Shown in pieces: positions 1 to 26,590 of a stretch of 28,048 nucleotides of DNA. The DNA is taken from the NCBI GenBank assembly GCA_964035545.1, contig CAXIUT010000057.1, positions 75,183 through 103,230 of the forward strand, given 5' to 3'. The notes under the pieces were generated by a model. The model was not told the origin of the DNA. It did not search any database and saw only the letters and a program-made list of their open reading frames with translations. A program made the translations under genes and the position numbers. The DNA is from Bugula neritina (Eukaryota; Animalia; Bryozoa). The stretch's first letter is position 1, and every line of letters begins with the position of its first letter.

Positions 1-75
1 CCCAACCCCACCCCAACCCCAACCCCAACCCCAACCCCAACCCCAACCCCAACCCCAACCCCAACCCCAACCCCA
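1..75. repeat. Left telomere, (CCCCAA)n
   Basis: Tandem C4A2 hexamers from base 1 to about 75 (one CCCCA variant), then unique sequence. C4A2 is the Tetrahymena-type ciliate telomere repeat. Confidence 0.98.
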
Positions 76-467: not shown

Positions 468-3400
468 ATGTAGTTATCAAATGAAAAAATGTTCAAATCG
501 ATTATATCTATAATAGATGAAGATAGCTATCACGAAAGAACAAAAAACCATGGCAATCATTAAAATTATATAAAGAATGGAGAGGAAATATTATTATCAT
601 TATTCAGAAAAAATCATTTTCCTCTTCTTCATCAAATTAATACTAAACTACTAAACAAACAATCACAAAAGACAATCTTGAAACAATCGACAACACTAAT
701 TCTGATGATTAATAAATATAAAGTGATAGATGCAACTATAACAACCATTTCAAAAGAATAAGCGATAAGCCTTCACCATAGATACACTTGATATCTAAAG
801 AATCAAAACAGGAATTAGATAGAAAATGGAAATAATAAAGCTATTCATCGATAGTATAATTTTTAGATCATATCAAAAGTTAAATTCAAAATAATTCCAT
901 CTATAATTAACTAATTAGTTCTTAATTGATATTGGATATTATTAATTATGATAATCAAAGTTTTTTGAATCATAATTAAATTGTAGATCTAATTAGAATA
1001 GTTCTAGAATATATGGTTTTTTGTAAAAATCAATATTTATCGGAATAGAATAAAATAAAATCTTAGTTATTGATGGAATCTTTTACTTAAGTTATTGGTA
1101 AAAAATGGGCTAAATTGTAAAATTAAATATATTTTGAGAATCATGATGTTCTATTGATATTAGTATATATTGTTAAAAATGTTAAAGGAAAAAAATAATG
1201 TTTCCTTGATCTTAATTTTGATTTTTCAGAATAATAAGTCATCAAAATGTCTAATTAAGTTAAAAGATTATGCAGATATGATTTAAGAATAAGAAGCTTT
1301 TGCTTTTTATCGAATTATTTACATTATTGTTGCCTTAAAATGGATTAAAAGGGAGTTAAACTAATTAAATAGAATAAAAATTAAAATAAGTAATAAAAAT
1401 ATTGTCAAAACAACATCCAGCTGCTCCAGCTCTTGAAGGATAAGATTCATTGTTGTTAAAATTTTAATCTTTTGCTGTTGATTATTCAAATTAAATGCCT
1501 ATCCTTGATTTTTAAAACAACTAAACATGTAGAAATTAAATTTTAGAAGAGTTTATATCAAAAAGAGTCGAAGAAGCAAAGTCAAGATTTTAATAATTTA
1601 ATCATTTCATAGAGAAAGCATGTACAAAGTATGGATATCATTATAAATCTGGCTTAAAAGTTAAAAACATGGAGCATCTTAGAGCAGTTAGTCGAGTAAA
1701 ATAAAAAATGTTCAAAAAGCTTTTTAAAAAAGTAGATTTATCTGATTTCTTATAAAAGAATCCTAAAGCTAGAATCCACTAATTTTTATAATATGAGACT
1801 AAAGAATATAAATCAACACTAATTAACATGCTTGACTTGATAAATGAACCTATTATATGGTAAATCGATGATCTCCTAAGAGCTAAGTGTATGTTTTCTA
1901 GTGTTTCAAAGATAAATGAATGTTGTTAATAATTGATAAAATAAATTAAAATAAGAAACTATCGATTAGTTGGAATTAAAAATCGATTAAAAGGCAAAAC
2001 ATCTGATCTTAAACTTACTATTCTTATAGGTAATACAATATGTTAATTACAGTTGGGAATCGATTTTACTGCAATAGATAATGAGTTTAATCATAAGTTA
2101 TACTAATTATTGAGATCTAAATTTTTTAGTCCTTTATTGATGCTTTAGAGATTAAATTAAGCTATAACTAAAGAATTTGTGCAAGATTGTTATTCTAGAA
2201 TCATAGCTCATTAAAAATCTAATATAGACTATTGTTTTCTCATTAAATTTGAAGATACTAATAAACCTTTTCATATATTATTATAATTCTTGAAAAAACA
2301 TACAATCGTTCAGTAAAATATAGATTAATTTCATCCTGATTATAGAAATATAAATCTTTTGACCCAATAAAGATAAATATTTAGAAAACTTTTAGAACTA
2401 CCTGAAATATAAAATAACAATAAAAAAGATTAACTAATAAAGTACAAAAACAATGCTGATTTTTTATTGAATTCAAATTACAAAGAAGCAGGTAAGGCTT
2501 TACGTCAATATCAGTAATATTTTGAGCATAAAAATTATGAATGTTTTTCAGGAACATAAATAATAAGTGAATATAATTAAAATTAAAAGAGTATGCTGAA
2601 ATACAGGTAAAAGTAATGAATTATTATAAAAAATTATCAGCATTTAATAAAGTTATATAGCATTATTATTCAAATAAGAAGTTATTTTAAAAATATCTAT
2701 CTCAAATAAATAGAGCTAAAATATAAAAATGTGTTGGCTCGTCTTACTAACTGATGGGATAACTGTAAAAAGCGCTTCTTCATTATTAAAAAGCATTATC
2801 TTTTGTTGATAATTCTGATCTCAATCTTATCTATTTTTATAGTTTGTCTGGTCAAATTTAAGTGAGAAAAGGAAACTGTTAAAAATCTTTAGAATTATGT
2901 TAGAAAGCGCTAAAACTATGTGAAAATAACATAAGTGATAAAAGAGTGGCATTTTTGAAAGGACAGTGTCTGGTGGTGATGGGTCGAGCATATTTATCAA
3001 GGAAGAGATATTCAGAAGCGATGTAGAATTTTAAAAAGGGATTAGAGTTGATATAAAGAATAAAAGGAAAATACAATATAAATATAATAGCAGTTAATAA
3101 GTCGATTACTAATATTTATATTCAGCAGAATAAATATGAATAAGCTCTTGAGAAATGTTGGAGAAATATTGATATAATATAAAAGAAAAAAGGATATAAC
3201 AGTTTGGCTTGTGTACCTTATTTGAGCAACTTAGCTGTGGTATTGATTTTTTTGTTGAGAAGATAAGAAGCTCTTAGTAAATTAAACATTTGCTATGAGA
3301 TATAATCTCAGCATAATGGTAAAAATTGTTTTGGATGTGGTGATACTTTGACCAATATAAGTTAAATTTAGCATCAAATGATGAAATACAAGAGTTGTCT

Positions 3401-4163
3401 CAGACATCGTATTGAAGCTTTATCGATTAAGGAGTAAATTATCAAAAGAGATAATAGTAAAGGTAAATTTTCATTATGTTTGCCTCTTTAAAATATCGGA
3501 TAAGTATTGAAAGATATGGGATACTGCTAAGAAGCATTTTACTACTTCTTTAAATCTTTTACCATCCTCAATGAGTTGTATGGAGACAATACGATGAAGG
3601 TAGAGTTGATTACTCGCTTTATAGGTCAAAATTTCTTCTAATGGAGAAAATACTCATAAGCCTTACTATGTTTAAATAAATGTTTATAATTAATATAGAA
3701 AAATGTTAACGTTGAGGATAGATCTTCATTGGCAGAGTAATATATAATTATCTATAATACCATCTCTTTAACTTATTCTAGGAAGTGGTAACTGGCAAAT
3801 GCTAAAGTATATGTTGAGAAATCTTTGGAGATCATGAATAAAAGTACGACATTATCGTCTTATTCTCTTTACTATGCTATGAGTATAAATATCAAGGCAA
3901 AGATCCAAACTCAAGAAGGTAATTTATAAGAAGCTTAAAAATATTTTATGTAATCTTGTCATCACTGTTAAAAAAGTAATAACAAATATTTGGAATTCGG
4001 GTATGCGCAACTAGGATTGGCATAAATATAAGAACTAAGAAACAATAACGTGAAAGCTATCAAATATTTCAAAATAGCTTTATAACTATTTGAAGAAGCA
4101 CCCTCAATGAAAAAATATATCTAATAAAAAATAAAATAACTAAAGTTCTCAATCGAACAATGA
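468..4163 (+). CDS. RelA/SpoT-like (NT_Rel-Spo-like) nucleotidyltransferase domain plus C-terminal TPR array (about 10-11 repeats); frame broken at about 610, 1283 and 2580
   Basis: Frame +1 (about 1282-2580) gives GLKVKN..RAVSRVKEK (about 1651-1707), IDDLLRAKCMF (1864-1896), IKNRL (1975-1989), SDLKLTI, ICELQL (2038-2055) and NHKLYELLR (2089-2115). Frame +3 (about 2583-4163) gives TPR repeats such as KCVGSSYELMGELEKALLHYEKALSF and YLSNLAVVLIFLLRREEALSKLNICYEI, with TGA at 4161-4163. The N-terminal part reads in frames +3 (ATG 468) then +2, so the 5' end is uncertain. Confidence 0.72.
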
Positions 4164-4280
4164 TAGTTCTTGAATAAATAATTTTTATATTATAGTAAAT
4201 AGTTATCATGATTGAAATATTTATAAAATACAGAATACTACATTCTTATAAATAATTTCTAAAATCAAATTTAAATAGAA

Positions 4281-6516
4281 ATGGGTCAGAACCAACCGAA
4301 TCCTTTCGAGAAGGGAAGCAACTTCATGTCACAGTACATCATTAATAAAAAATAACAATAGAATATGCAAGTCTATCTAACACATATCAAAACCTAGCAC
4401 TAACATCTACTCAAATAATTAAATTTCAATGAGCTGAGATAGTTTTCGATTGCATGCTAAAAACTTAAAATCAGAAAATCTATCAAAAATAATCATCTGA
4501 CTACATTGGATAGTAAATATATTGTTAGATAGGTTATGAAGAGAGGATAGAAGATACTATGTGTTCGAATTTTTATAAAATTTATAGTTTATGGAATTAT
4601 CCGCATAAATCACTTCAAGATGATCTTTCCTCAAGATCATTGATCAAAAAACAATTTTCTGCTAGCTAGCTCAGAAACCTTCTAACGGCAGTTATCGATG
4701 GAATGAATGCCATGCAGTAAAGATAGTTAAAACATGAATGTTTGAGCACTTAATCTATAAGAAGAGATAGAGATGGAGGTTGGAAGGTGGCTGATCCTAT
4801 GACTGGTTTGACTACTAATATGGATATAGTTTTGAATTAGAGAGCTAAATAAAATTTATATTTGTCGCCTTAGCAATGTCAATCGCTTTTTGAATAAAAA
4901 CCTATTAAGTTTAAAAATTCTTATAAAAATGATGTTTTTACTACTGGTATGATTATTCTTGAATGTGGTTTGATTTAAAATCAAAGGAATTGCTATGATT
5001 AGGGTTATTATGAGATCAAAAAAGATGTCTTGCAATCTCATCTCAATAAATTTCATAGAAAATATGATGATTAAGGACTAAATAAAGTTGTTTAGATCAT
5101 GCTAAGTGAAGATTACTCGAAAAGACCAGATTGGCATCAATTAAGCAAAATAATTGCGAATAACAAAGAAATATCTGTCAAGAGAAATCCAGTTATTAAT
5201 GAGCAAGTATAAAAATAAGAATAAAATTCAAAAATTATGACTAATATACCAGCAGTTCGCACTTCAAAGCCAGAAAATAGTGTTCCCACTCTTCGATCCT
5301 CTCAACCTTAAAACTATATGCCAACTATTCAACCATCTAGACCATAAAATCTTCCTCCTCTTCCTTATAGAACCTCAAGGTTATAAACGAGTCAAGTTCC
5401 TATAAATACAAGATTATTTAACAAATAGAAATCGATCATTGAACCCAAAACATAAAAATTATCAAATAGCAAAGTCAATCCTATAACAAGAATAAATTTT
5501 ATTTCACCAGCTAAGTCACCAAACATTCAGTCGTAAGTGAAGCAAACATCTATAATTCAAAAATAAATCAACCAAAATTCAATCGTACAAGGATAGAGCA
5601 ATAGAGTATCAACAGTCTATGCTAATGCTTCAGTTAAGGCCCAATAGCCAGTATCTCCAAGGTCACCTAGATCTCCAGGACAAAGAAACGTCAGTTTCAA
5701 TATAGTTCCAAGTGCTAATAACAACAAATCAACTCTCAATCCAGTAAGAAGCAACGTTTCTGAAAACATATCATACCAAAATAGCGTTCATTCAGTGGCG
5801 TATCAGCAAAATCCAATTAAAATATCTGAACCTATGATAGTTAAAAAGTAGAGCTAGCCTTTCCAGTAGATATTCAAGGCTCCTTAAAACTATCAGCATG
5901 TAACTTAGTTGAAAACCTATTATCATTCATCTGGCAAATAAAAATAAAATGTAATGATGACTCCTAAATAAAATCATATCAATATTGAGAAAACAAATGA
6001 ATAGGCTCAATATGTTCAATAGTTTTTCCAAAGAGGAAGTAAGTACGAGGGGTACAAGTTGAATGGAGTGAGGCATGGAAAGGGAAGATTTTACTATCAA
6101 GATGGAGGCAGCTATGATGGCGAGTGGAAAGACAACAAAATGAATGGATTTGGTGTTCTATACTATCAGTCAAACATCAAAGCCTATGAAGGGGAGTGGC
6201 TCAATGACTAGTTCAATGGTTTTGGTAAGTTGTACAACTAGAATCCAACTACTATGCATAATAGTTTCAATTATAACAACTTTGATGAGATGGAAGATGA
6301 CTGGGTCAGTTACTAAGGTATTTGATAGATAATATAGGTAATTTTAAGAAAGATGCTAAGGATGGGGAAGGTTTGATGGTTTTTTCTAATGGTTAGTAGT
6401 TCAAGGGATGGTTCAGAGATGATTTAGTTGAAGGTCAAGGAGTATTTGTCACCAAAAATAAATAAATTATTAAAGGAATTTGGCGTTAAAATCAACTTAT
6501 TCAACTTCTCAATTGA
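4281..6516 (+). CDS. Pseudokinase (N-terminal) + S/P/Q/N-rich linker + MORN-repeat protein; exons 4281-4512, 4533-6317, 6338-6516
   Basis: Starts MGQNQ (possible Gly2 myristoylation). Kinase-fold motifs are HLLKEL, LKHECLSTESI (HRD lost), WKVADP, YLSPE, KNDVFTTG and KRPDW. MORN repeats include YEGYKLNGVRHGKGRFYYQDGGSYDGEWKDNKMNGFG. Two 20-nt introns restore the frame, and TGA is at 6514-6516. Confidence 0.88.
4513..4532 (+). other. 20-nt spliceosomal intron
   Basis: gtaaatatattgttagatag; its removal joins frame +3 to the kinase-like frame +2. Confidence 0.85.
6318..6337 (+). other. 20-nt spliceosomal intron
   Basis: gtatttgatagataatatag; its removal restores the MORN motif SYEGNFKKDAKDGEG. 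Confidence 0.9.
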
Positions 6517-6576
6517 TTTCTATTATTAACACAATAAACTCTATAATTTACAAATAATTATTTATACAATATTCAA

Positions 6577-8757
6577 ATGTAGCCATCAAAAGATAACAAC
6601 AACCTCTTCTAGGTCCTATAAAGAGGAGACAGACATATTCTCAAAGCCCATACGAAAGCAATAGTTCTTGTGGGTCTGACAAGAGCAGGAAAATCAACTA
6701 CATTCAACTGGATGCTGAACAAGCCAATGCTCGGCCAAGGCAAATTAATGACATATTACACTAACCTGATAAATGATGACAGTGTTGCTTAGTTGGGGAC
6801 ATACTATACATCTGTGACTTTGGCACCGAATATTTATGTCTAATTTGGGTAGAGTTAAAGTTTGATAGATATGGCGGGTTATTGCGATTCTAGAGATTAT
6901 GTTGGTGTGATAGGAGTGTCGTATTTTCTTAAAGCTATATTTTAGAAAGTTAGGTTTGTTAAATTTATATTGGTTTTTGATTAGCATAGATTTATTGAGG
7001 AAACTGGTGAAGGCATCATAAAAACATTTAACAATTTTATCAATATGTTCAAAATCAATAAAATGACTACAAATATGAAATAAAAACTGAAGCAGTCGAT
7101 GGGCATAGTGGTAACTCGTTCGAAACGAGGACAGGATCATTATTAGTATATGGGTTAGGTGGCTGATCGACTGAGACATCCATCTCTTCATGTATAAAAC
7201 AAATAATTTGTTGTATAATTGATTGAATCCCTCAGAGATTCGGGTCGGATGTAGGATTTCAGAGCTGCTGTTAAGGATACTAATCCTGAGCAATGTAGAT
7301 TTGTTAAGAGGTTTAATGATAAGCTAAAATGGAGTTATTTTGATTTGAATCAGATCTAGAAGTAACTGGGTTAGTCTATAATTGAGTTACCAATATAGAA
7401 ATAATTTAATTTGTTAAAATAATAGCAAAAATATTAGTTTATTAGTGCAATTGATAACAAGATGCAATCGTATACTTAGTTTTCTTAATTGGTGGGTTCT
7501 TTTGCGTAGATGTTCAGGTAGAATTGGTCAAATTTTATAAATAACTACAAATAAAACAATACAATCAAGTTGTAGATATTTGATATGAGGAAAGGATTCA
7601 AATAGATAGATCGATATATAAGTAAAAATTATGTGTATCAATAAGAATAGTAAAAATCAATCAAAGTGTCATATTAATCTATGAGCATAATAAAATCAAT
7701 ATAGAAAATAATGAAAATCTATGATATTGTTCTCAGCATGGGCGAGCATAATGGGACGTAGACATTTGATTGGATGATGTAAAAATTTACAACAGAATAT
7801 ATCCAAATAGTTGATAACATCAAATATTTCATAACAGATAAACAAGAATAATAAAATCTAAATAAACTAAAATATCTACTAACTCGAGGCTGCAGATAGT
7901 TTTCAAAATTATACCAACTTCAGCCATAAAGCATCCATGAAGTTAAGTGTAGGATACCGGATAGTATGAATACTATTTTTAATTATAGTAAAAAATAATT
8001 TATATCGTTTTTTGTTGATTAGTTTACAGGTGATTTAGTTGGTTTGTTGTTTCAATCGGTGGAGCAGATAGAGGAGTATTAGGGTTTTATTCATTGGTAT
8101 TAGAATTAGTTTGGAGAGGAGAGGGATCCTTTGTTTATGTGCTAGAAGCGGTCGGATATTTAGATTTGTAAGGCTGGTGTTATGAATAGAGAGGGGAAAA
8201 AGTATAAGGCTTTTCATTGTTATTTGCAATTATTTAGAATCTATTTTCAGATATAAAAATATATAAATCATAATGATACTTAAAATAAATAAAGATAAAT
8301 GCAGTAGTTGTATCTAAAAAAGGTGAGGTTAGTTCGCAAGATGGTTCCTATCTTAAAAACAATGCCCTAGACATAATTTTTACCCAAAATATATGCGTTG
8401 CAATTATGCCAGCATCTAAAGATGGTTGATGATGCCTGCTAGATATATTAAACTATTATAAATTCTAGTAGTATACATGTAAGTTAGCGACATAGAATAT
8501 GCAGGGACTATTCGGATTATTGTTGTTAGTGGGGGAGAATAGACTATGCTATCAGATTGTATTAAAAAATGATGATAGAAGTTGATGATTTTGAGAAACA
8601 AACGTAGATAGTCAATATTCTTATCGATATCAAAAAAGATTATAAGAATATAGTTGCTAATTCGATTAAGAAATGGAATGATTGGAGCAAAATGGAAGAT
8701 AGTCAATATTTATAGCAAAAAATAGATTAATTGGAATTATTGGCACCCAAAGAATGA
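6577..8757 (+). CDS. TRAFAC P-loop GTPase (AIG1/GIMAP/MMR_HSR1-like G domain) with long helical C-terminus ending in TPR-like helices; 726 aa, intronless
   Basis: Uninterrupted frame from ATG 6577 to TGA 8755-8757. G1 is GLTRAGKS (6673-6696), G2 is TSVT, G3 is LIDMAGYCDSR (DMAG at 6868-6879) and a G4-like IVVTR lies near 7105-7119. Confidence 0.85.
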
Positions 8758-8803: not shown

Positions 8804-11800
8804 TCAGTAATCTAGTTATCTGACTTTTGGCATGAAATAAAATTTAGCTGCTGCTAGAAATCTCATTGCATACTAATTCGGAGGTAGTACAGTGGGTTAA
8901 TGTCCATATTTTAGCTATTTGAATTTCTTTTAGACCATTTATTTGAAGTGATATGGTCGCATGAAATCGATCACTCCCATCCTCAAAGTCTATCCATACT
9001 AAATCACCAATAAAGAGTAGTCTATAACTTCATGTTTGCTTAGAAAATGTATATCTTCTTGAAGGGTATCATAGAAATGTTTGAAGATGGGTTATTATAG
9101 CAGATATGGTTGACTATTCTTATCTATTTTTAAATTAATATCAAGTCCTGTAAATTTTTATCTAACTGAAGGTATTTTAGTCCGATTTATCTATGAACCC
9201 TTGAGATCGTAGACTTTGAATATGCCTTAATCTAAATTAAAAAATAAATTTTGCATTACTATGCATTTATATGAATTACCTCTTATTGTTAATTAGTATA
9301 ATCCATATATTTTAGTTAATATGCTATTTCTGCCACTGCTTTTAGCTTATTTCATATGATTCAAATATCCACAAGCAAATTTTTGAAACTAAATAAACTA
9401 TGATTCCTTTATAGTTTTAATCACTAAAAGAGAATCTCTAGATTTGGCAAATAAAGAATTACTTTTCCCTCCAGAAACTTACCATCTCTCGACACTTGCA
9501 AAACTACGGACATACATTTCATAAGATATCCCTTCTCCCTTGCGAATCTATTCGAATTACTGATGGTAATAAGCTACCATTTCATAGCTCTATCTTGTTA
9601 TCTAGTCCTAGTTCATGTCTTAATATTTAAGTTAGTCTATTTCTCTCTTGATGTCCCAGTTAGTTGAAAGATGTTTGCTTATGACAATATTGATTCTCAT
9701 GGAATCAGTGTTCTGGTTATTGCTTTTATCGAGTTGATCACCAAATTCAATAGAATTAAGTCCATAAGCTAGGATGGAGATGTGGTCTTTGTAGTTGAGG
9801 TCGTTGAAGTAGAGGTAGAGTCCTTTTTTTAGTTGATATCTCTTTTTTTTCATTTAATCTAAAAATGGTTTCATTGCTGAACTTTTATATTCAATATTTT
9901 TTAAAGAAAAACTTATGCTATTTTGTCTCTTAGGGTATCTAGATTATGTATCTTCACTGGCATCTTTTGATAGTTATTTTTACATTACGATTTATTATAT
10001 TTAAATAGGTGCAAATTCTTATTTCTTTTATTCTTTATGATCATTACTGATCTTAAAAAATAACTTCTAGATAATATTCATTTCTCCAACATCATTGCTT
10101 TTCTTTCTAAATAACTTATCTAAATCTGGAACAAGTTGATCATTGGATTTTCCTTCATATTATTATTCTTCACTAATTTTCATTTAAATATCAGGTATAT
10201 TGACTTTCTTTTTATCAATTTTATTTTAAATATAATTCAATATCTATACAGCAGTTTTGATGATATAATCTATTTTAGCAAATTATCTGATAAAATATGT
10301 CCAATCAGTATGTTAAGTAACTTACTTGTTCTTAGATCTCTAATTTAATTCTTTTAAATGTTAGTCTACTTTTTATATTATTTTTGATAACTTTTTAATA
10401 CGATCATATCTATCATTAAATTTATTATCGTTTTAGGTTGTTAGTTTTACCTGTTAGAAGTAATTCAAAGTATTGAAGATCCAGTTGCTGAGAATATTCA
10501 GATAGTTGTTTCTTATTGTACTAGATCTCTAATAAAATTATAAAATATACTAAATTATTTTTAACTATATATATTTTAGTGATTTTTTATCGAATATATT
10601 GATGTTCTATATTTTGTATGTTTTCAGGTTGAAAATTTATAATTTGAATTACATGTTTGATGTTTATAGGTATCTTTAGACTGCACTATGTTTGCATTCT
10701 TAGATATCTTGGCTTATTGAAGAACTTTTTCTATAGTTTATTTTTGTTTATTACTAGTTGACGTAATGAGCTGATGAGATTAATTTTAGAAAGTAGTGGA
10801 AACTGTGTTTGAGATAATTTTTTCCTATTTTTGATTTATTTGTTACTATCTATCCGCATTACTAGCATTTGAAATAGCTGAATATATTTGAATTTTATTT
10901 ATATTTTTTAAGAAAATTTCTCATATGTTATCTAGTGAGATCTCTTTAGTTCCAAATCAAGGGCTAGGATTGTTAGTTTAGTCGCCTTGCGCTGATTTAT
11001 ACTCCTCGAGAGTTGAAGTAGTAGCGTTATCGATGACAAAATTTACAATTTCTACAATTTTTTAGTAAATTAGCTGACATACTTAATAGAAAATGGCCTA
11101 TTGTAATATCTTGATGAGAATAGGGTTTTATTTTATAGTATGTACTTTATCCACAAAGATCAAGGATAGATTAACGACCCATCAAATGACAATATTCTTA
11201 TTATTTTTTATCCAAATCAACGCTTTTCATTTCTTTTAGAGCCATTTTATAAAAAACAATTGAAAAAGATTTCAAAGTATCTACAATAAAACTATATTCC
11301 ATATTAAGTCTATTCAACCTTGATGATAAAATATAGGTCCTATCATTCCACATCTAAGCATCGACATAGATAAGATATTTCTATAGATGGATTTGTCTGA
11401 TAAGTATTAGAAGTAGATGTAGCATTTTCGTTAGTTGTTTTTGACTTTATTGGTCTTTTTAGCTGAGTACTAAAGTGTAGATTCCTTTATCTTTTTATAA
11501 GTAGATCAGAGATTCTTTGATGGTTGGTTTGCTATAGGTTGTCATTGAATTTAGTTGTCCAACGAATCGTTATTTTTAGTATTTATGGACAGTTAATATA
11601 TTTTTGATTGTATTTTTGATGCCTGATAATTATGCTATTTTTTGCATTTATTTTTTGCTTAATCCATTAATAACACATATTTTTTGTTGATTAAAATAAT
11701 TCAATATCTCCCTATTGATATTCTTTTCCACAAATATGATATCAGGATTCAATCTCATAATCTTCTCCTCTAACAACTGATAAATACTATTCTATTTCTA

Positions 11801-12598
11801 TATTAATTCTTAGAACTTAAACTTGAAAATAGATTAATCTAGTGAATTTTAAATGATGATGACAATGGGTCGATAAAAAGCAGATTACATACTTTTGATT
11901 GATATATTTTTATCTATAACCATTCCTTAAACTAACTATATTATCTATCCTGGCTATCCTGTTACTATTTTGGTGTCGATGTAGTCACTGGGGTCCATGT
12001 AGTTGTCAGAAGAGTCGATATCTGTTGGTAAAATATTTAGTTTGCTATCTAGGAGGGCTCTTGTTATTTTTTATAATAATTTATTTCCTTAAAATTAGGT
12101 ACTTATTTTTCCCATTTAGATGAATTGTTTATATATTTTTTTTGATAAATTTCTGACCTAATTTTATAATTATTAAGCTATGATTTATTTGTTATCTCGT
12201 TATATTGATCCAAAGATATGTTTGATAGAAAAGAAACCATTTTACTCATCAGAAGATGACTAACTTTATGACTACTATTTTTATCTGATCATATCTTGTT
12301 ATTCTTAGACCATATATGCTAATCTATTTAGATCTTTTTTTATTTTTTATATATCTTTTTTGCAAAATTAGCAATACCTCACATACTTTTATGATAAACC
12401 TAGATAAGTGCCATTAATGTATAGATCTGAACAGTGAGAACAGTATATTTTGCCACAAAATCTGCAATGATGTTTTCGACGAATGCAGTGAAAGTTTTTA
12501 CAGCAGCATTGACATCGATTGCTACTTTAGTCTTTACGCCAGTTTTAACGAGGACATAAACGAGATTTCAACTATTTCCAGAACTTTTATTTCATCAT
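8804..12598 (-). CDS. FAB1: Fab1/PIKfyve-like phosphatidylinositol-3-phosphate 5-kinase (FYVE - CCT/TCP1-like - PIPK), about 1264 aa
   Basis: FYVE: WRKDESSNRCQCCCKNFHCIRRKHHCRFCGKIYCSHC. CCT-like: YMDPSDYIDTKIVTG...VEGMVIDKNI. PIPK: CIVMQNLF...YDLKGSEINR, VIDYSLLV, MGVIDFMRPY and PTVLPPNEYAMRF. Start, spot-checked internal segments and TGA (8804-8806) share one frame, but the middle was not checked codon by codon. Confidence 0.92.
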
Positions 12599-12676
12599 CT
12601 TTTGTTATTAATGAATATTAGTTGTAAAATATTATAAATTCTCTTTTAATGATAGTTTATATTATTGTTAAAATCA

Positions 12677-15054
12677 TCATAAATCTTCATTATCTTAACT
12701 TTCCAAGGGTATCAATCGATTGTTCATAAATATCTTCCACTGATCATCATAATGATCTATATAATAACATAGTTACAAGATAAAAAGTTTTAGCTGATGC
12801 CTGAATCGAGCACCCACCAACTAGGTCCTCCAAAATCCCAAATATGTCTGTAGTTTGCTCTATGAGAAGTTCCATAATTTCCCAATTCCATCTTATTGCA
12901 TTTACCTACATTAGCAGTATGCAAGTTTCCCCAGCCAGCAGCTTACCGATTGAACAACTTGCCGAGAAGAGGGTGGGCACCTAGAGGCAAGTGAACCATG
13001 ATATCTCGATGGAATTATCCCCAAATCCACTTGCTACTATCTTTTGTTTTGAAATGAGTCGTCAAAGTGGATTCCATATTTTTCCAGGCAGTATTCATTG
13101 TTTTTTGTTGTTTTTTGTTTCCTTTGAAAGCTTGATGGATGTAGTTGTATATATATTGCTGGGTATTGTGGACATTAAAGATACTGAAGTTCAAGTTGTA
13201 GGTAGGTCTGATTTCTTTCCATAATTAAAACATAAAGATTTCATACATAGTAGCTTGATAAGAAGTAGACGTGAAGTTGCAACTGAAATCAGCATGACTT
13301 CTTTCTGCGCGATCGACTACCTTTCTTATTTCTGGTAATATTTGTTGGCAATATGCATCTACTGTATCATGTAGAAGTTCTAGAGCAAATTGGTTGTTAA
13401 TTTTTCTATTTGATTTGATTTAGTTACTAATCAGATATTCTAGACGATCAGCTCTAGCAGTAAAAATAGAATATTTGAAATATCCGTCATGAACTTTTTC
13501 ACTTGCAACTTGGTTGTTGCTAACAACTATGAATCCATTTTTAGGATCAAATATCTCCAATCTATCTTCTGCTGGCATAAAACCTAACCAATCATTTTAA
13601 GATGTAGTTCCATCTTTTAAATAGCAACCTGATTAATAATTTTTTCTTATTGGATTTACTCCCAATTGTTTGTACATGATGTGGTTGTCAGCAGTTGCTC
13701 CTACTAAGCTGATACTGGGAGCGTATGAGGTACCTTTGGCAAAAAATTATTTTATTTATTTTATGTTTGTTGCTTCAATATGTCTAGAACTGACCAAAAG
13801 GGAGGTGTAGTCTTGGTTATAACCAGTCCAGCTAAGTGATATTGTTTCGTGGGTTAGATCGAAAATGCCAAGTCCACTGACTAGATAGTTCATAATTGGT
13901 CCTCTGTGGGTAGTTCTAACAGTGTGTTTATATTATTTTAATCCTTTATCTGTTTTGATTATGATCGTTTATTAGCGTTTTCCCATTTCTTTCCATTATC
14001 CGTCAATCAAATATTTATCTCCTTTTATTTTTTATTTGTAGAGATCTTGGGTATCAGTATAGATAGTAGTCAGTGATAAGGCAAGATAGTCTGTTTTTCC
14101 ATAGGCGAAAGTAATGCCAGGTATTGCTACTCCAGCAAAGTTGATTTATTTTCCATTGTGTTGATAAGTAGCTTTCAGCTGATACCAACTAGAAGGATAG
14201 GGATTGTCCAAGTGAGGATCTCCTGATATAATTGGTTTGCCTGATTATGTGTGTTATCCAGAGACAACCCAGCCATTGCTACCTTAAGAAGAAATAAAAT
14301 AATCTGGGAGTCCTAGGTTGACTATCTTTGATATTTCAAGTGGATCAAGTATTGCTGATTGGACATAGTTGCTTTTGGTAAACTTTTAGGGAAGGTCTTA
14401 GTCTTTGATAACATTGGCAGAATCGAAAGCCCATCCTTATTTTGTACTTGGAAAGAATTTATTGATTTAATCGATAGTATGATTGGCCAAGAAGCTACTT
14501 CGAGTGTATTCTTAAAGGATAGCAAAGGAAGTTCCCCAATCCATCAATTTAAACAGAACAAATATTTTTTTAACACTCCATTCTTACCATTTAATCCCCA
14601 AAATATAAAACTAAAGTGGCATAAATAACCTTCTCTTTACTTCATCATTAATTCCTTGAGAAAAAGCTTCAAAATCAGCATACCCTTCTGGATCTGATTT
14701 CTTCATGTGATCAACTACATGATCAGCTACCTGAGAAAACCCTAGATCTCTCATCATGATATCTACTTGAAGTGTTCTTTATCCTAGATATTTTGAAAGT
14801 TGTCCTGTTGCATAGATATATCTGAAAGTACATTGGAAGAGTCTGTCTTCAGATATGACGTTGCCCCAGGCATAGAGGAAACTCCTGCGGTTGGGAGCAT
14901 GGATTTTAGGAATACCATTTTCATCTCGATCTATTCGGATTTTATTTGATTTGTAGTTAAGAGAAGAGACATATGATGGTGAGAAAGTGAAGTAGAATGC
15001 TACGATTGAGATCAATGCTAAGAGTATTATTGAAGTAAATATCTTTTTGATCAT
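12677..15054 (-). CDS. Penicillin acylase / acyl-homoserine-lactone acylase family Ntn-hydrolase (peptidase S45) with N-terminal signal/anchor; about 785 aa; one intron
   Basis: Hydrophobic N-terminus MIKKIFTSIILLALISIVAFYF. Alpha-chain motifs are IRIDRDENGIPKIHA, EDRLFQ and PLEFYILGIKWEEWS. The beta-chain starts G|SNGWVVSGEHTESGKPIISGDPHL (Ser at 14278-14280). The C-terminus has SGISENFLSYHYDDQW and ends in tandem TGA TGA. Confidence 0.92.
12757..12776 (-). other. 20-nt spliceosomal intron
   Basis: gtaactatgttattatatag on the minus strand; its removal restores FLSYHYDDQW. Confidence 0.88.
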
Positions 15055-15278
15055 TGTTGTAACAATATTTTTAATTGAATTAAAAAATATATATTTATTG
15101 AAATTTATTTCAATAGCTGTTTAAGAGATTTAAAATTTATTTTTATGTTGATTTTATCGTCTATTTATTTAAAATCATTAAATATTTATTTTATTTATCT
15201 ATTTCTGGCTGTATAATTTCAGAAATGATCAGAAATATATTTTTTATCAAAGAATATTTCCATTAATTGATATATCTT

Positions 15279-17831
<2,553 letters not shown>

Positions 17832-23026: not shown

Positions 23027-25802
23027 TCATTTTTAGAGATACTTTTTGGCTTTATTGAGGATTAAACTGATTTCATTTTTATCTTAATAATTTTTTTCAA
23101 GATAATCAATCATTACTGCTGTCATTGCTTTTCTTTAATCTTTAAATTATGTTAGTTTATCTTTGAATATATTTTCAAGACTAAATTCTTTTAAAAGTTT
23201 TGAATTGTATTCCCAATACCCTTACGCTTTCATTAGTCTAATAAAAACTTAACATGGCCTTAAATTACCTTGATTTGGAATATATTAGGAAAATCCTCCA
23301 CCTCTCATCCTAATAATAACGGTCATAATTTAGTTATCTTCAATTATGCCTTAATCATCTAAAGTTAAATTTAATATAATAACTAGAAGACGGTAATATT
23401 TTAGAATAAATAAAATAACTACTCATTTGGTATAATTTTCCTCTTAAATTTTTTTAAAATTTGATGGATCTAAATATATCAGAATTTAAATATTTTATAT
23501 TCTGCTAAGAAGGAAAAAGTTATTTTCCATGGTGCAATAATCTAATGCTTTCTTATGGAAGTTTTCCACCAGAAGCATTATTAACCAGATTGTATATTTA
23601 TTTTATCGTTGTAGAAGAAGAATTGGTTCGAATTGCAAAAGAATCGAATAAAGAATGTATTATTATTTGTATTTTTTATCTTTTTTGTATTTTTTATCTT
23701 TTTTATTATCCGTTTAATTGTATATTTTATTTTACTTTTAACAGTTTAAGAACAATAAATAAAGTTGATTGATCTATTATATTTAAATCTTTTAAAGAAT
23801 AATTTTAATATTTAGAAATATTTTTTCCTTCATGTATTAACCTAATGCAATCTTGACGACATTTTCCGCCTGATGCACTATCAATCAAACTATACATTTT
23901 ATTCACAGTTGTTTCAGGATTTGTACGAATTGTATAACGATCACCAGTCAAAGTATTTAATTTAATAGTTATTTTTTAAGATTATTAGATTTCTGATTTA
24001 TATTATTCTAGTTATTTTAGTTCATTTTTTGAAATAACAGGAATGTTTTATTTAGTATTTCTCCAAATAAATGCAGTATATTTACTTAAAACTTGATTTT
24101 GTATACTCTTTTATATAATTATCTATTTATTTGGATATTATTCTTTCTCCATTTCTCCTATTTCTTCATAAATTATATATTTTCTCAAACTGTTGATGCA
24201 AGAATCATTGTTTATCTTTAATTTTATCTTCTAATGTTTAGAAGATTCTTGATCAAAATAAGATATTTATAGCTATTATTATTCATCTGAGTCCTATTCA
24301 TTGAGAGGAGCATTTGATAGAAGGAAAAATGAATTTTATTTTCCTTTCTTTATTATTTTTGGGATTGGAGGATATGATTATTGGTATTTTTTATTGTTAT
24401 ATTTGATACTAAATTGTTTTATTTCAGTTGAAATAAGAATATCCAATAGTTGAATAATTTGTTTTTTCATTTATTAATTATTCATAATAAAAATATGTTA
24501 TCCACCTCCTTCATTTGCTCCTCTTCGAATCATATCGAAACTAACTCCATTTCCAACCCCTATAACACTAGTAAATCCAATACGACTAATTCTTATATCT
24601 TAAATAATCTTGATTACTTACTCTACGTTGGACACTTGACCATCAGTTAGTAAAATTATATGTCGAATATATTCATTCATTTACTTACATTCTTTCCTTA
24701 TTTATAAAAGAGGAGAAGCGATTTATGTTTTGCCATAATTTGCCTCAAATTTTGTTATTTTTTCTATAGCTTATTCGACATTTATTTCATTGTAAATTAT
24801 ACTTGTTTTAAACATCTTTTTAAATTGGCTGCCAAAGCTGATTATGTTGAAAAAAGAGTTTATTGGAAGAGATTTCAAGAAGAGAATCAAGGATTCTTTT
24901 GCTTTTATTATTCTTTAGTCACTCATTGATCCTGATCTATCAAGTAGAAAGATATATTAACCTTTATATGAGTTACTGTTAGATCTATTTGATTTTGGAG
25001 GAATCCATGTTACGTTGAGGCAAGAAGGTCCTGAAGTACATGTAACTTAATTGAATTTATTGAGTTCAAAGGTAAATTATAAATCTTTTTCTGGGAGTTT
25101 AGCTTCATCAAGAGTATAAGTTCTTAAAGTTTTATTGAAAATATTTTCTGATAGTTTATGACTGGAAGAGCTTACTTTTTTAATTTTTTTATCTGAAAAT
25201 AAATTTATCTTGAAATCCCACTAACTAGCTTTATCAATAGTAGTTATCTTTTAAGGATATTTTGATAAATATTTTTAAAATGATCTATTGATGGCTTTAA
25301 TTTGTGTTTAGTATCTAGGACCAATATGTGAAGGAATTCTCAAAGTCCAACTATTAGGTAGTTAGTTTGATAGTTTTCCAATCATTTAAAATTCAATTTT
25401 AATGCTTTCATTTCCTGGAAGATTTCCAAGTTGTACCTTTAGTATTGATTTTTCTTGTAAAGAGTTAGAAGTCATCATTACTACTTATCCTTGTTCTTTT
25501 GCATATTAGTATTATGCAACTACTTATTTTCTTTCTTTTATAATTCCTTCAATAGTTTTGTTTTTGTAAATTCCAATGACTTTAGTAATACAAAAATTGG
25601 GATCAGTTGGAATCGAGTAGTGAATTTCTAAAGTTTTTTTCAATGGATTTGTGTAAACTTGAGATGATTTTATTTCAGCAAAGTTGTTTTTGATATCAAC
25701 TAAATACTTATTAGAAACTATAGGAACCATTAGTTTCTCTTTGTTGTCTAAAAATGAGTAACACATGCCTGCTAGAGAAGAAGGAGCGGCTTACTCTTAC
25801 AT
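23027..25802 (-). CDS. Second VIT-vWA (VWA5A-like) paralogue with two divergent UBLs, the second ending RMRGG; frame interrupted at about 23360-23500
   Basis: Colinear with the 15279-17831 gene (FAEIKSSQVY, HYSIPTDPNFCIT, WTLRIPSHIGPRY, GEYIFLLDRSGSM, ILLTDGQV, GYWEYN, KAKKYL). UBL-a spans about 23972-23742. UBL-b spans about 23674-23297 and ends TVIIRMRGG. Removing 3n+1 nt is needed to reach the C-terminal frame. Confidence 0.85.
23667..23702. repeat. Perfect 18-bp tandem duplication inside the CDS (KREKIQ x2)
   Basis: ttgtattttttatctttt x2, at the junction between the two UBLs. Confidence 0.85.
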
Positions 25803-26590
25803 TGTGTGATAAAAAGTATTAAAAATCAAAATCCAGATCGTAATTAATACTTTTTATTTAAGCTTTATATCAACCTCTTATATATTTTAAAGAGTGATAT
25901 ATCTCATTTTAAATATATAAAATAATAATTTTTTTTGATATTTTTTAAAAGAATAATAAACATACTTATTCTGAGATCTTATTTGTTTAATAATATTTTT
26001 TCAAAGAATAAAGAAGATTAAAAATAACTAACTAAAGATAAAGAATGCTGATATTTTATCAGTATGGAAAATATAGACATATCATGTTGATTATTGAAAT
26101 TAGACTCAATTTATTATTCCATTGAATGTTTCTTAATTATTAATATTATTTTCTTAATATCATTAAATCAAAAAGATTGGCCTCTAAAAACAAAAAGAAT
26201 TATTTTTTGTTGATTAAAGAATAAATTATCTTTTTTCATTATTTTATATATATTAGAATTTTAATAAATCAATAAATATCAATCTACTTTTTAATTTTTT
26301 TGTCTTTTTCTACGATTCGTATATAAATAAAATACTTATTTTCATTTTAATAATCAATAGATTTATCAAGTAAAAAGTAATTTAGATAAGATATAACAAA
26401 ATAAAACTACAAATAAAAATATCGATAAAAAATCAATACTCCATTCCATAACCCATACAATATTGTCTACCTTATTCATTTAAATCAGATAAATCCTTTA
26501 ATTTCTTTATAAAAATACCTTTATTAGATGTTTAGTTTTCTAAACTTCCATTTTTTAAATAATTAATTCAAGTCATAAAGAAAAAACACA

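Follow-up and report, generated by a model that had tools for sequence, protein, structure and literature searches.

Does the N-terminal domain of a ciliate protein with tetratricopeptide repeats (TPRs) belong to the RelA/SpoT alarmone synthetases? The question is raised by a stretch of 28,048 nucleotides (hereafter the window) from the Bugula neritina assembly GCA_964035545.1, contig CAXIUT010000057.1, positions 75,183 to 103,230. The gene under study runs on the forward strand from ATG 1495, its first in-frame ATG, to TGA 4161-4163. It was described in an earlier note on this DNA as a RelA/SpoT-like nucleotidyltransferase (NTase) fused to a TPR array, with a candidate role as a sensor-effector or in immunity. 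As judged from its sequence, the domain does not appear to belong with the RelA/SpoT synthetases. Canonical synthesis of (p)ppGpp by it is unlikely, since most of the residues kept by all such enzymes are absent from the translation. The repeats form a genuine TPR array, and in two related samples a single open reading frame (ORF) holds them together with the domain. The proposed role as a sensor-effector or in immunity is pure conjecture.

Motifs of the N-terminal domain

The N-terminal domain comprises residues 1-212 (1495..2130, forward strand), as delimited by the motif coordinates, and is the stretch that had been read as RelA/SpoT-like. All the strings on which that reading was based are present in a single frame: GLKVKN at 1651-1668, RAVSRVKEK at 1681-1707 (its Glu encoded by TAA), DDLLRA at 1867-1884, KNRL at 1978-1989, SDLKL at 2002-2016, ELQL at 2044-2055 and HKLYE at 2092-2106 (Glu again as TAA). 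The Glu of ELQL is the TAA at 2044-2046, exactly as had been stated. What did not hold is the fit of these strings to the motifs of the RelA/SpoT homologues (RSHs), where the only literal match is E-x-Q, as Glu-Leu-Gln (TAA-TTA-CAG, 2044..2052).

The comparison was made with 19 RSH domains, and the family minimum for each motif block was taken from bona fide PF04607 domains. Syn1 (G-R-x-K-x3-S-I-x2-K) binds the ATP phosphates and has R, K, S and K each conserved in 19 of the 19 domains and I in 18. In the candidate the invariant Ser and the last Lys are absent, and the better of two registers, K-V-K-N-M-E-H-L-R-A-V, retains a single Lys and has Arg replaced by Lys; its block score is -7.3 bits, where the family minimum is +23.9. 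Syn2 is D-x4-R on a strand and carries the metal-binding Asp; here D-D-L-L-R gives D-x3-R or D-x2-R (-8.4 bits, family minimum +19.3). The acceptor loop with the stacking Tyr, Syn3 (D-[YFW]-[IV]..PK..[GN]-Y-x-S-x-H), has D, K, Y and H in 19 of 19 domains and S in 18 of 19. Lys alone is kept in the candidate, which scores -7.7 to -22 bits against +47.9; the guanine-stacking Tyr, apparently absent according to the earlier note, is missing. Syn4 (E-x-Q-x-R-T) contains the catalytic Glu. Its E and Q are present, and the R-T found in 19 of 19 comparison domains is G-I here (-12.7 bits against +34.7). Finally, Syn5 (H-x3-Y-K, on the helix that comes next) corresponds to H-K-L-Y, that is H-x2-Y, with -0.3 bits against +4.4, a block weakly conserved within the RSH family itself.

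In the register of the earlier note the five blocks score from -0.3 to -12.7 bits and rank 9th to 102nd among the positions of the same protein, which is no better than chance. Of the 17 near-invariant RSH columns at most four are retained, namely Arg in Syn2, Lys in Syn3, and both Glu and Gln in Syn4.

Profile and homology searches

The comparison set comprises E. coli RelA and SpoT, long RSHs of six phyla and eight small alarmone synthetases (SASs) from plasmids and phages, together with the CapRel-like plasmid protein L002 and the divergent RSH L020 from a phage contig, each with its family. All database proteins in the set (P0001-P0360) carry Pfam PF04607. The members derived from loci are annotated as RelA/SpoT or GTP pyrophosphokinase or have a tblastn match to the RelA synthetase region. 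The query was the translation of residues 1-260 under NCBI table 30, and our own hidden Markov models (HMMs) were built from 19 to about 45 PF04607 domains. The family collections, seeded by E. coli RelA, L002 and L020, returned mostly close relatives, and these profiles are therefore narrower than that of Pfam.

Against residues 1-260, HMMs of rising breadth gave no significant score (-2.8, 0.2 and 1.9 bits), and the HMM of the L020 family gave 4.8 bits. Where measured, these scores fall only between about the 95th and the 99th percentile of those of shuffled copies. The divergent control L020, excluded from the model and with long insertions of its own, reached 46.8 bits. Profile-profile alignment of the N-terminal domain with RSH profiles (hhalign) returned probabilities of 0.1% and 0.7%, and hmmalign left unaligned the whole Syn3-Syn5 half of the RSH model, which is the family hallmark. 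A dynamic-programming chain of the five blocks with generous gaps scored -0.3 bits (z 2.2, p 0.02 before correction for the scan of the 28-kb window), and 92 bits were obtained for L020. The proposed identity as a RelA/SpoT-like synthetase is not borne out by these results. The earlier note had itself held that the lack of a profile or structural match would speak against it, and no profile match to RSH was found as far as profiles were tested.

Database searches with the N-terminal domain used stop-free pieces of at most 35 residues, and no match was obtained with them in Pfam (E = 10), NCBIfam, PADLOC, the PDB sequences, the ESM Atlas or plasmids (tblastn). An exhaustive search of a 35-residue piece against 1.84 billion representatives gave 0 matches, and two metagenome scans by means of one-piece alignments gave no confirmed relative. 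No paralogue was found within the window.

The TPR array

The C-terminal half of the protein is formed by eleven tandem TPR-type repeats of 42 residues (residues 405-866, 2706..4091, forward strand), identified by self-similarity, unit alignment and weak Pfam matches. Self-similarity gives a single peak, at a lag of 42 with z 4.6. The consensus of the 11 aligned units is TPR-like, h..h.N.IG.I......hEEAL..h.K.LEIhE...G, and the tandem units agree with TPR proteins in length (34-42 residues in such proteins) and in the packing pattern of helix pairs. The array announced in the earlier note is thus real. The Pfam matches are to TPR_1, TPR_2 and TPR_11 (E 0.045-0.22) on a single piece of 40 residues at 2904-3023. 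The search of PDB sequences with the TPR pieces returned only a chance match of NIKAKIQ to ubiquitin.

Among known repeats the array resembles the 42-residue arrays of the TPR_12 or kinesin-light-chain type, with its eleven helix-pair units of that same length, small or hydrophobic residues at the TPR packing positions and a recurrent E-E-A-L...K-x-L-E-I. It differs from them in that the Pfam matches are weak and fall on TPR_1, TPR_2 and TPR_11, the pieces searched being of 40 residues.

Gene structure and selection

The coding sequence of the window lies in two frames. The first part (1495..2578, forward strand, codon starts 3n+1) was taken from the map of ORFs with TGA as the only stop and comprises codons 1-361 and the first base of codon 362; strain differences in it are mostly at third codon positions. 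The second part (2579..4163, forward strand, codon starts 3n, stop TGA 4161-4163) was taken from the same map and from translation and contains the TPRs. Between the N-terminal domain and the array a linker of about 190 residues (2131..2705, forward strand) is seen in the translation; it is rich in Lys and Glu, partly TPR-like, and holds the site of the frame change. The change falls near 2578-2616, where the 3n+1 frame ends at TGA 2617-2619 and the 3n frame opens at 2571, and here lies a run of four A (2579..2582, forward strand).

Contigs of four public runs were aligned to 1300-4400 of the window, and two of them cross the junction: one of run X1 (2777 nt, covering 1621-4396) and one of run X2 (1718 nt, 1684-3400). 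Their divergence from the window is 0.8-1.8%, and each has one additional A behind 2578, giving five A against the four of the window, as was established from the contigs spanning the site and a check of the translation. With the fifth A the gene is a single uninterrupted ORF of 889 codons. In two related samples, therefore, one ORF spans both the N-terminal domain and the TPR array, and one transcript would be expected across the gene. The contigs that contain the locus look genomic, and no run on record as RNA is among their sources. The fusion proposed in the earlier note stands in this sense, although in the window itself the two halves are in different frames, a fact to which it did not refer.

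All three single-base differences in length (at 1362, 2578 and 4260) consist of one A missing from an A-run of the window, which suggests systematic under-calling of homopolymers in the assembly. The run of four A would accordingly be an assembly error, because the other two length differences are also losses in A-runs and the downstream frame of 1.5 kb is intact. If under-calling is systematic, other apparent frameshifts in the ciliate genome may be artefacts as well. It is also conceivable, although improbable, that the gene is truly frameshifted in the strain of the window, being either a young pseudogene or a gene for an N-terminal protein of 374 residues that ends at TGA 2617-2619, with the TPR part untranslated. 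The four A in the window and the five in the two other samples would fit this, as would the sequence difference from both samples, by which the window represents another strain or allele. It is opposed by the TGA-free TPR frame downstream, of a length at which other frames of the window are rarely open, and by the restriction of the three length differences to A-runs, the pattern of under-calling. A short intron at the frame change was also considered (of the form GTA...AG, about 20 nt being sought), and a candidate of 23 nt at 2591-2613 fits the frames. It was dropped because the contigs of two samples carry the extra A at 2579-2582 and no joint is seen in them at the gene.

Among the 38 strain substitutions listed for the gene, table 30 makes 34 synonymous and 4 non-synonymous (2047 and 2049 counted as one Leu>Leu change). 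The synonymous share expected by chance is 20%, and the excess has P = 5e-20. The N-terminal domain taken by itself has about 8 codon changes that are synonymous and 2 that are not. This excess indicates that both halves are coding in the frames given above, and the gene is under purifying selection.

Genetic code

In the window TAA and TAG encode Glu and TGA is the sole stop. With TGA as the lone stop, and only then, there are ORFs of 445 to 1289 codons, and these contain dozens of in-frame TAA and TAG. In a pair of paralogues at 15102-17828 (forward) and 23358-26000 (reverse), with 391 identities over 725 aligned positions, the partners of TAA and TAG are Glu (12), Asp (6), Lys (10) and Gln (5). 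In the ubiquitin-like domain before 17193, a TAA and a TAG stand in the places of Glu16 and Glu24 of the known ubiquitin sequence. Strain variants inside the studied gene include TAA>GAA at 2374, GAG>TAG at 3828 and two exchanges between TAA and TAG; changes between TAR and CAR among them are absent. With the standard code the gene does not show up, which bears out what the earlier note held for the domain, and the paralogue partners together with the strain variants agree with reading both codons as Glu. No tRNA genes, suppressor tRNA included, were found in the window. The code is not a new finding: it is the same throughout as the peritrich nuclear code (NCBI table 30), in which UAA is Glu (Sanchez-Silva et al. 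2003, as cited in PMC4967479).

Weighing of the explanations

The most likely working model, to which about even odds are given, is a TPR scaffold or adaptor with a lineage-specific N-terminal domain. In this view the locus is one gene of a peritrich ciliate, from ATG 1495 to TGA 4163, with TAA and TAG read as Glu. Its product of 889 residues starts with a domain of about 210 residues for which no relatives are detectable, continues with the linker (about 190 residues) and has the eleven TPRs of 42 residues as its third part. The TPR solenoid would bind proteins or peptides as partners, and the N-terminal module would be specific to the lineage. Several points weigh against this model. A scaffold is a generic role, suggested by the repeats alone. 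The pieces of at most 35 residues are too short for remote homology, our own profiles are made of tens of sequences rather than thousands, and the query was a single sequence. The spacing Asp125...Lys173...Glu184-x-Gln...His200 is near the RSH order D...H...ExQ...H, by our own post hoc count, and two weak profile alignments, below significance, fall on the regions assigned to Syn1 and Syn2 in the earlier note. A diverged NTase fold is thus possible.

Such a fold would make the N-terminal domain a highly diverged RelA/SpoT-like domain whose active site is non-canonical and which is joined to a TPR sensor. It would pass a nucleotide-derived group to an acceptor that is neither GDP nor GTP, or be an inactive regulatory copy. 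We hold this to be a minority possibility, at about one chance in four. The spacing from the Asp of DDLLRA through K173 and E184-x-Q to H200, chosen after the fact, the literal E-x-Q and the local alignments just mentioned argue for it, and the hydrophobic and polar pattern would fit, in our own reading of the translation, the order strand-helix-strand-helix-strand-strand-strand-helix. All profile and profile-profile scores are nevertheless at noise level, the chain of five blocks reaches its p of 0.02 only before correction, and the Syn3-Syn5 half is left unaligned. The invariant R and K-x3-S-x3-K of Syn1, D-Y..PK..Y.S.H of Syn3 and R-T of Syn4 are absent, and the divergent RSH of the phage contig, with insertions of similar length, still reaches 47 bits. 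Somewhat less probable again is that the domain is a structurally genuine RelA/SpoT-fold NTase that sequence can no longer recognise, and that it founds a ciliate family joined to different repeat sensors; it would then be a eukaryotic analogue of the bacterial toxic alarmone synthetases coupled to sensors, with an acceptor other than guanine nucleotides. Very improbable is the reading of VGIKNRLKGKTSDLKL (residues 159-174) as a degenerate minimal NTase motif of the Pol-beta type or as a STAND-like P-loop ahead of the TPRs. It would draw on G160 with D171-L-K173-L ten residues on, on G-K-T at 167-169 behind a hydrophobic strand and on the NTPase-TPR architecture, which is common among STAND proteins. 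The Pol-beta pattern h-G-[GS]-x9-13-D-h-[DE]-h is here V-G-I-x9-D-L-K-L, with Ile for G/S and Lys for the second acidic residue, and the sole G-K-T is preceded by G-x6 where Walker A has G-x4-G-K-[ST]. The piece bearing VGIKNRLKGKTSDLKL (1945-2043) gave no Pfam, NCBIfam, PADLOC or PDB match even at E = 10.

Chromosomal setting and neighbouring genes

The window is a macronuclear chromosome end of a peritrich ciliate, with a GC content of 23-35% across its length. A telomere of C4A2 repeats is read directly at 1..75; its first two units are irregular (CCCAA CCCCA) and those that follow are regular CCCCAA. Some 1.4 kb separate the studied gene from the end, counted from which it is the first or second gene. 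In the interval between telomere and gene, 521-1300 (forward) is a possible small gene whose table-30 translation is protein-like.

The neighbours in the window encode MORN repeats, an AIG1-like GTPase, a penicillin amidase, VIT-vWA-ubiquitin proteins, an MBOAT protein, a cytosolic carboxypeptidase and a dual-specificity phosphatase. They are ordinary eukaryotic genes, and none of them points to a defence island. The MORN-repeat gene (6023-6208) adjoins a long ORF at 6517-8754 (forward), which has a P-loop in its N-terminal piece 6622-6789 and weak matches to AIG1 and MMR_HSR1 GTPases. An ORF of 1289 codons at 8807-12673 (reverse) contains 124 TAA or TAG codons (9.6%), and its product under table 30 would have about 12% Glu. 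The gene at 12727-15174 (reverse) belongs to the penicillin amidase family (PF01804 on two pieces), a family known best from bacteria and present here in a ciliate. The paralogues at 15102-17828 and 23358-26000 used above for the code are VIT-vWA proteins with ubiquitin-like domains, with Pfam matches to VIT at 15339-15554 and to ubiquitin at 17193-17471, the latter ending in LRLRGG.

The other two public runs, X3 (organism B) and X4, contain short contigs that match the TPR part at 98-99% identity. As these come under a second organism label and from a second study, the ciliate is not confined to samples from a single host or source.

Comparison with known systems and significance

RelQ, RelP and the synthetase domains of long RSHs (PF04607) share with the candidate a size of about 200 residues, the literal E-x-Q and a roughly similar spacing of the Asp, the E-x-Q and the following His-x-x-Tyr. 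The candidate differs from them in having no profile similarity (at most 4.8 bits), in lacking the Arg, Lys, Ser and Lys of Syn1, the D-Y..PK..G-Y-x-S-x-H of Syn3 with its stacking Tyr and the R-T after E-x-Q, and in carrying about 40 inserted residues between its putative Syn1 and Syn2. With the toxic SASs and CapRel-type RelA/SpoT proteins of bacteria and phages it shares the idea of a synthetase-fold effector coupled to a sensing C-terminal part. The CapRel-like family of the comparison set (the Psychrobacter plasmid protein L002 and 120 relatives, all with PF04607), in contrast, keeps all the RSH motifs; a profile that includes it gives the ciliate domain 1.9 bits, and the pieces of the domain have no PADLOC match.

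To our knowledge, RelA/SpoT synthetases are almost absent from the record of non-photosynthetic eukaryotes. No ciliate is listed in the 2011 survey of the RSH superfamily (PMC3153485). If the reading as a synthetase were true, its union with a TPR sensor would be a notable bacterial-type module of nucleotide signalling or defence in a protist. What stands is a subtelomeric gene, conserved and under selection, whose product is a TPR protein that begins with an orphan domain. Its practical lesson is that pipelines based on the standard code do not see the genes of contaminating peritrichs in animal assemblies.

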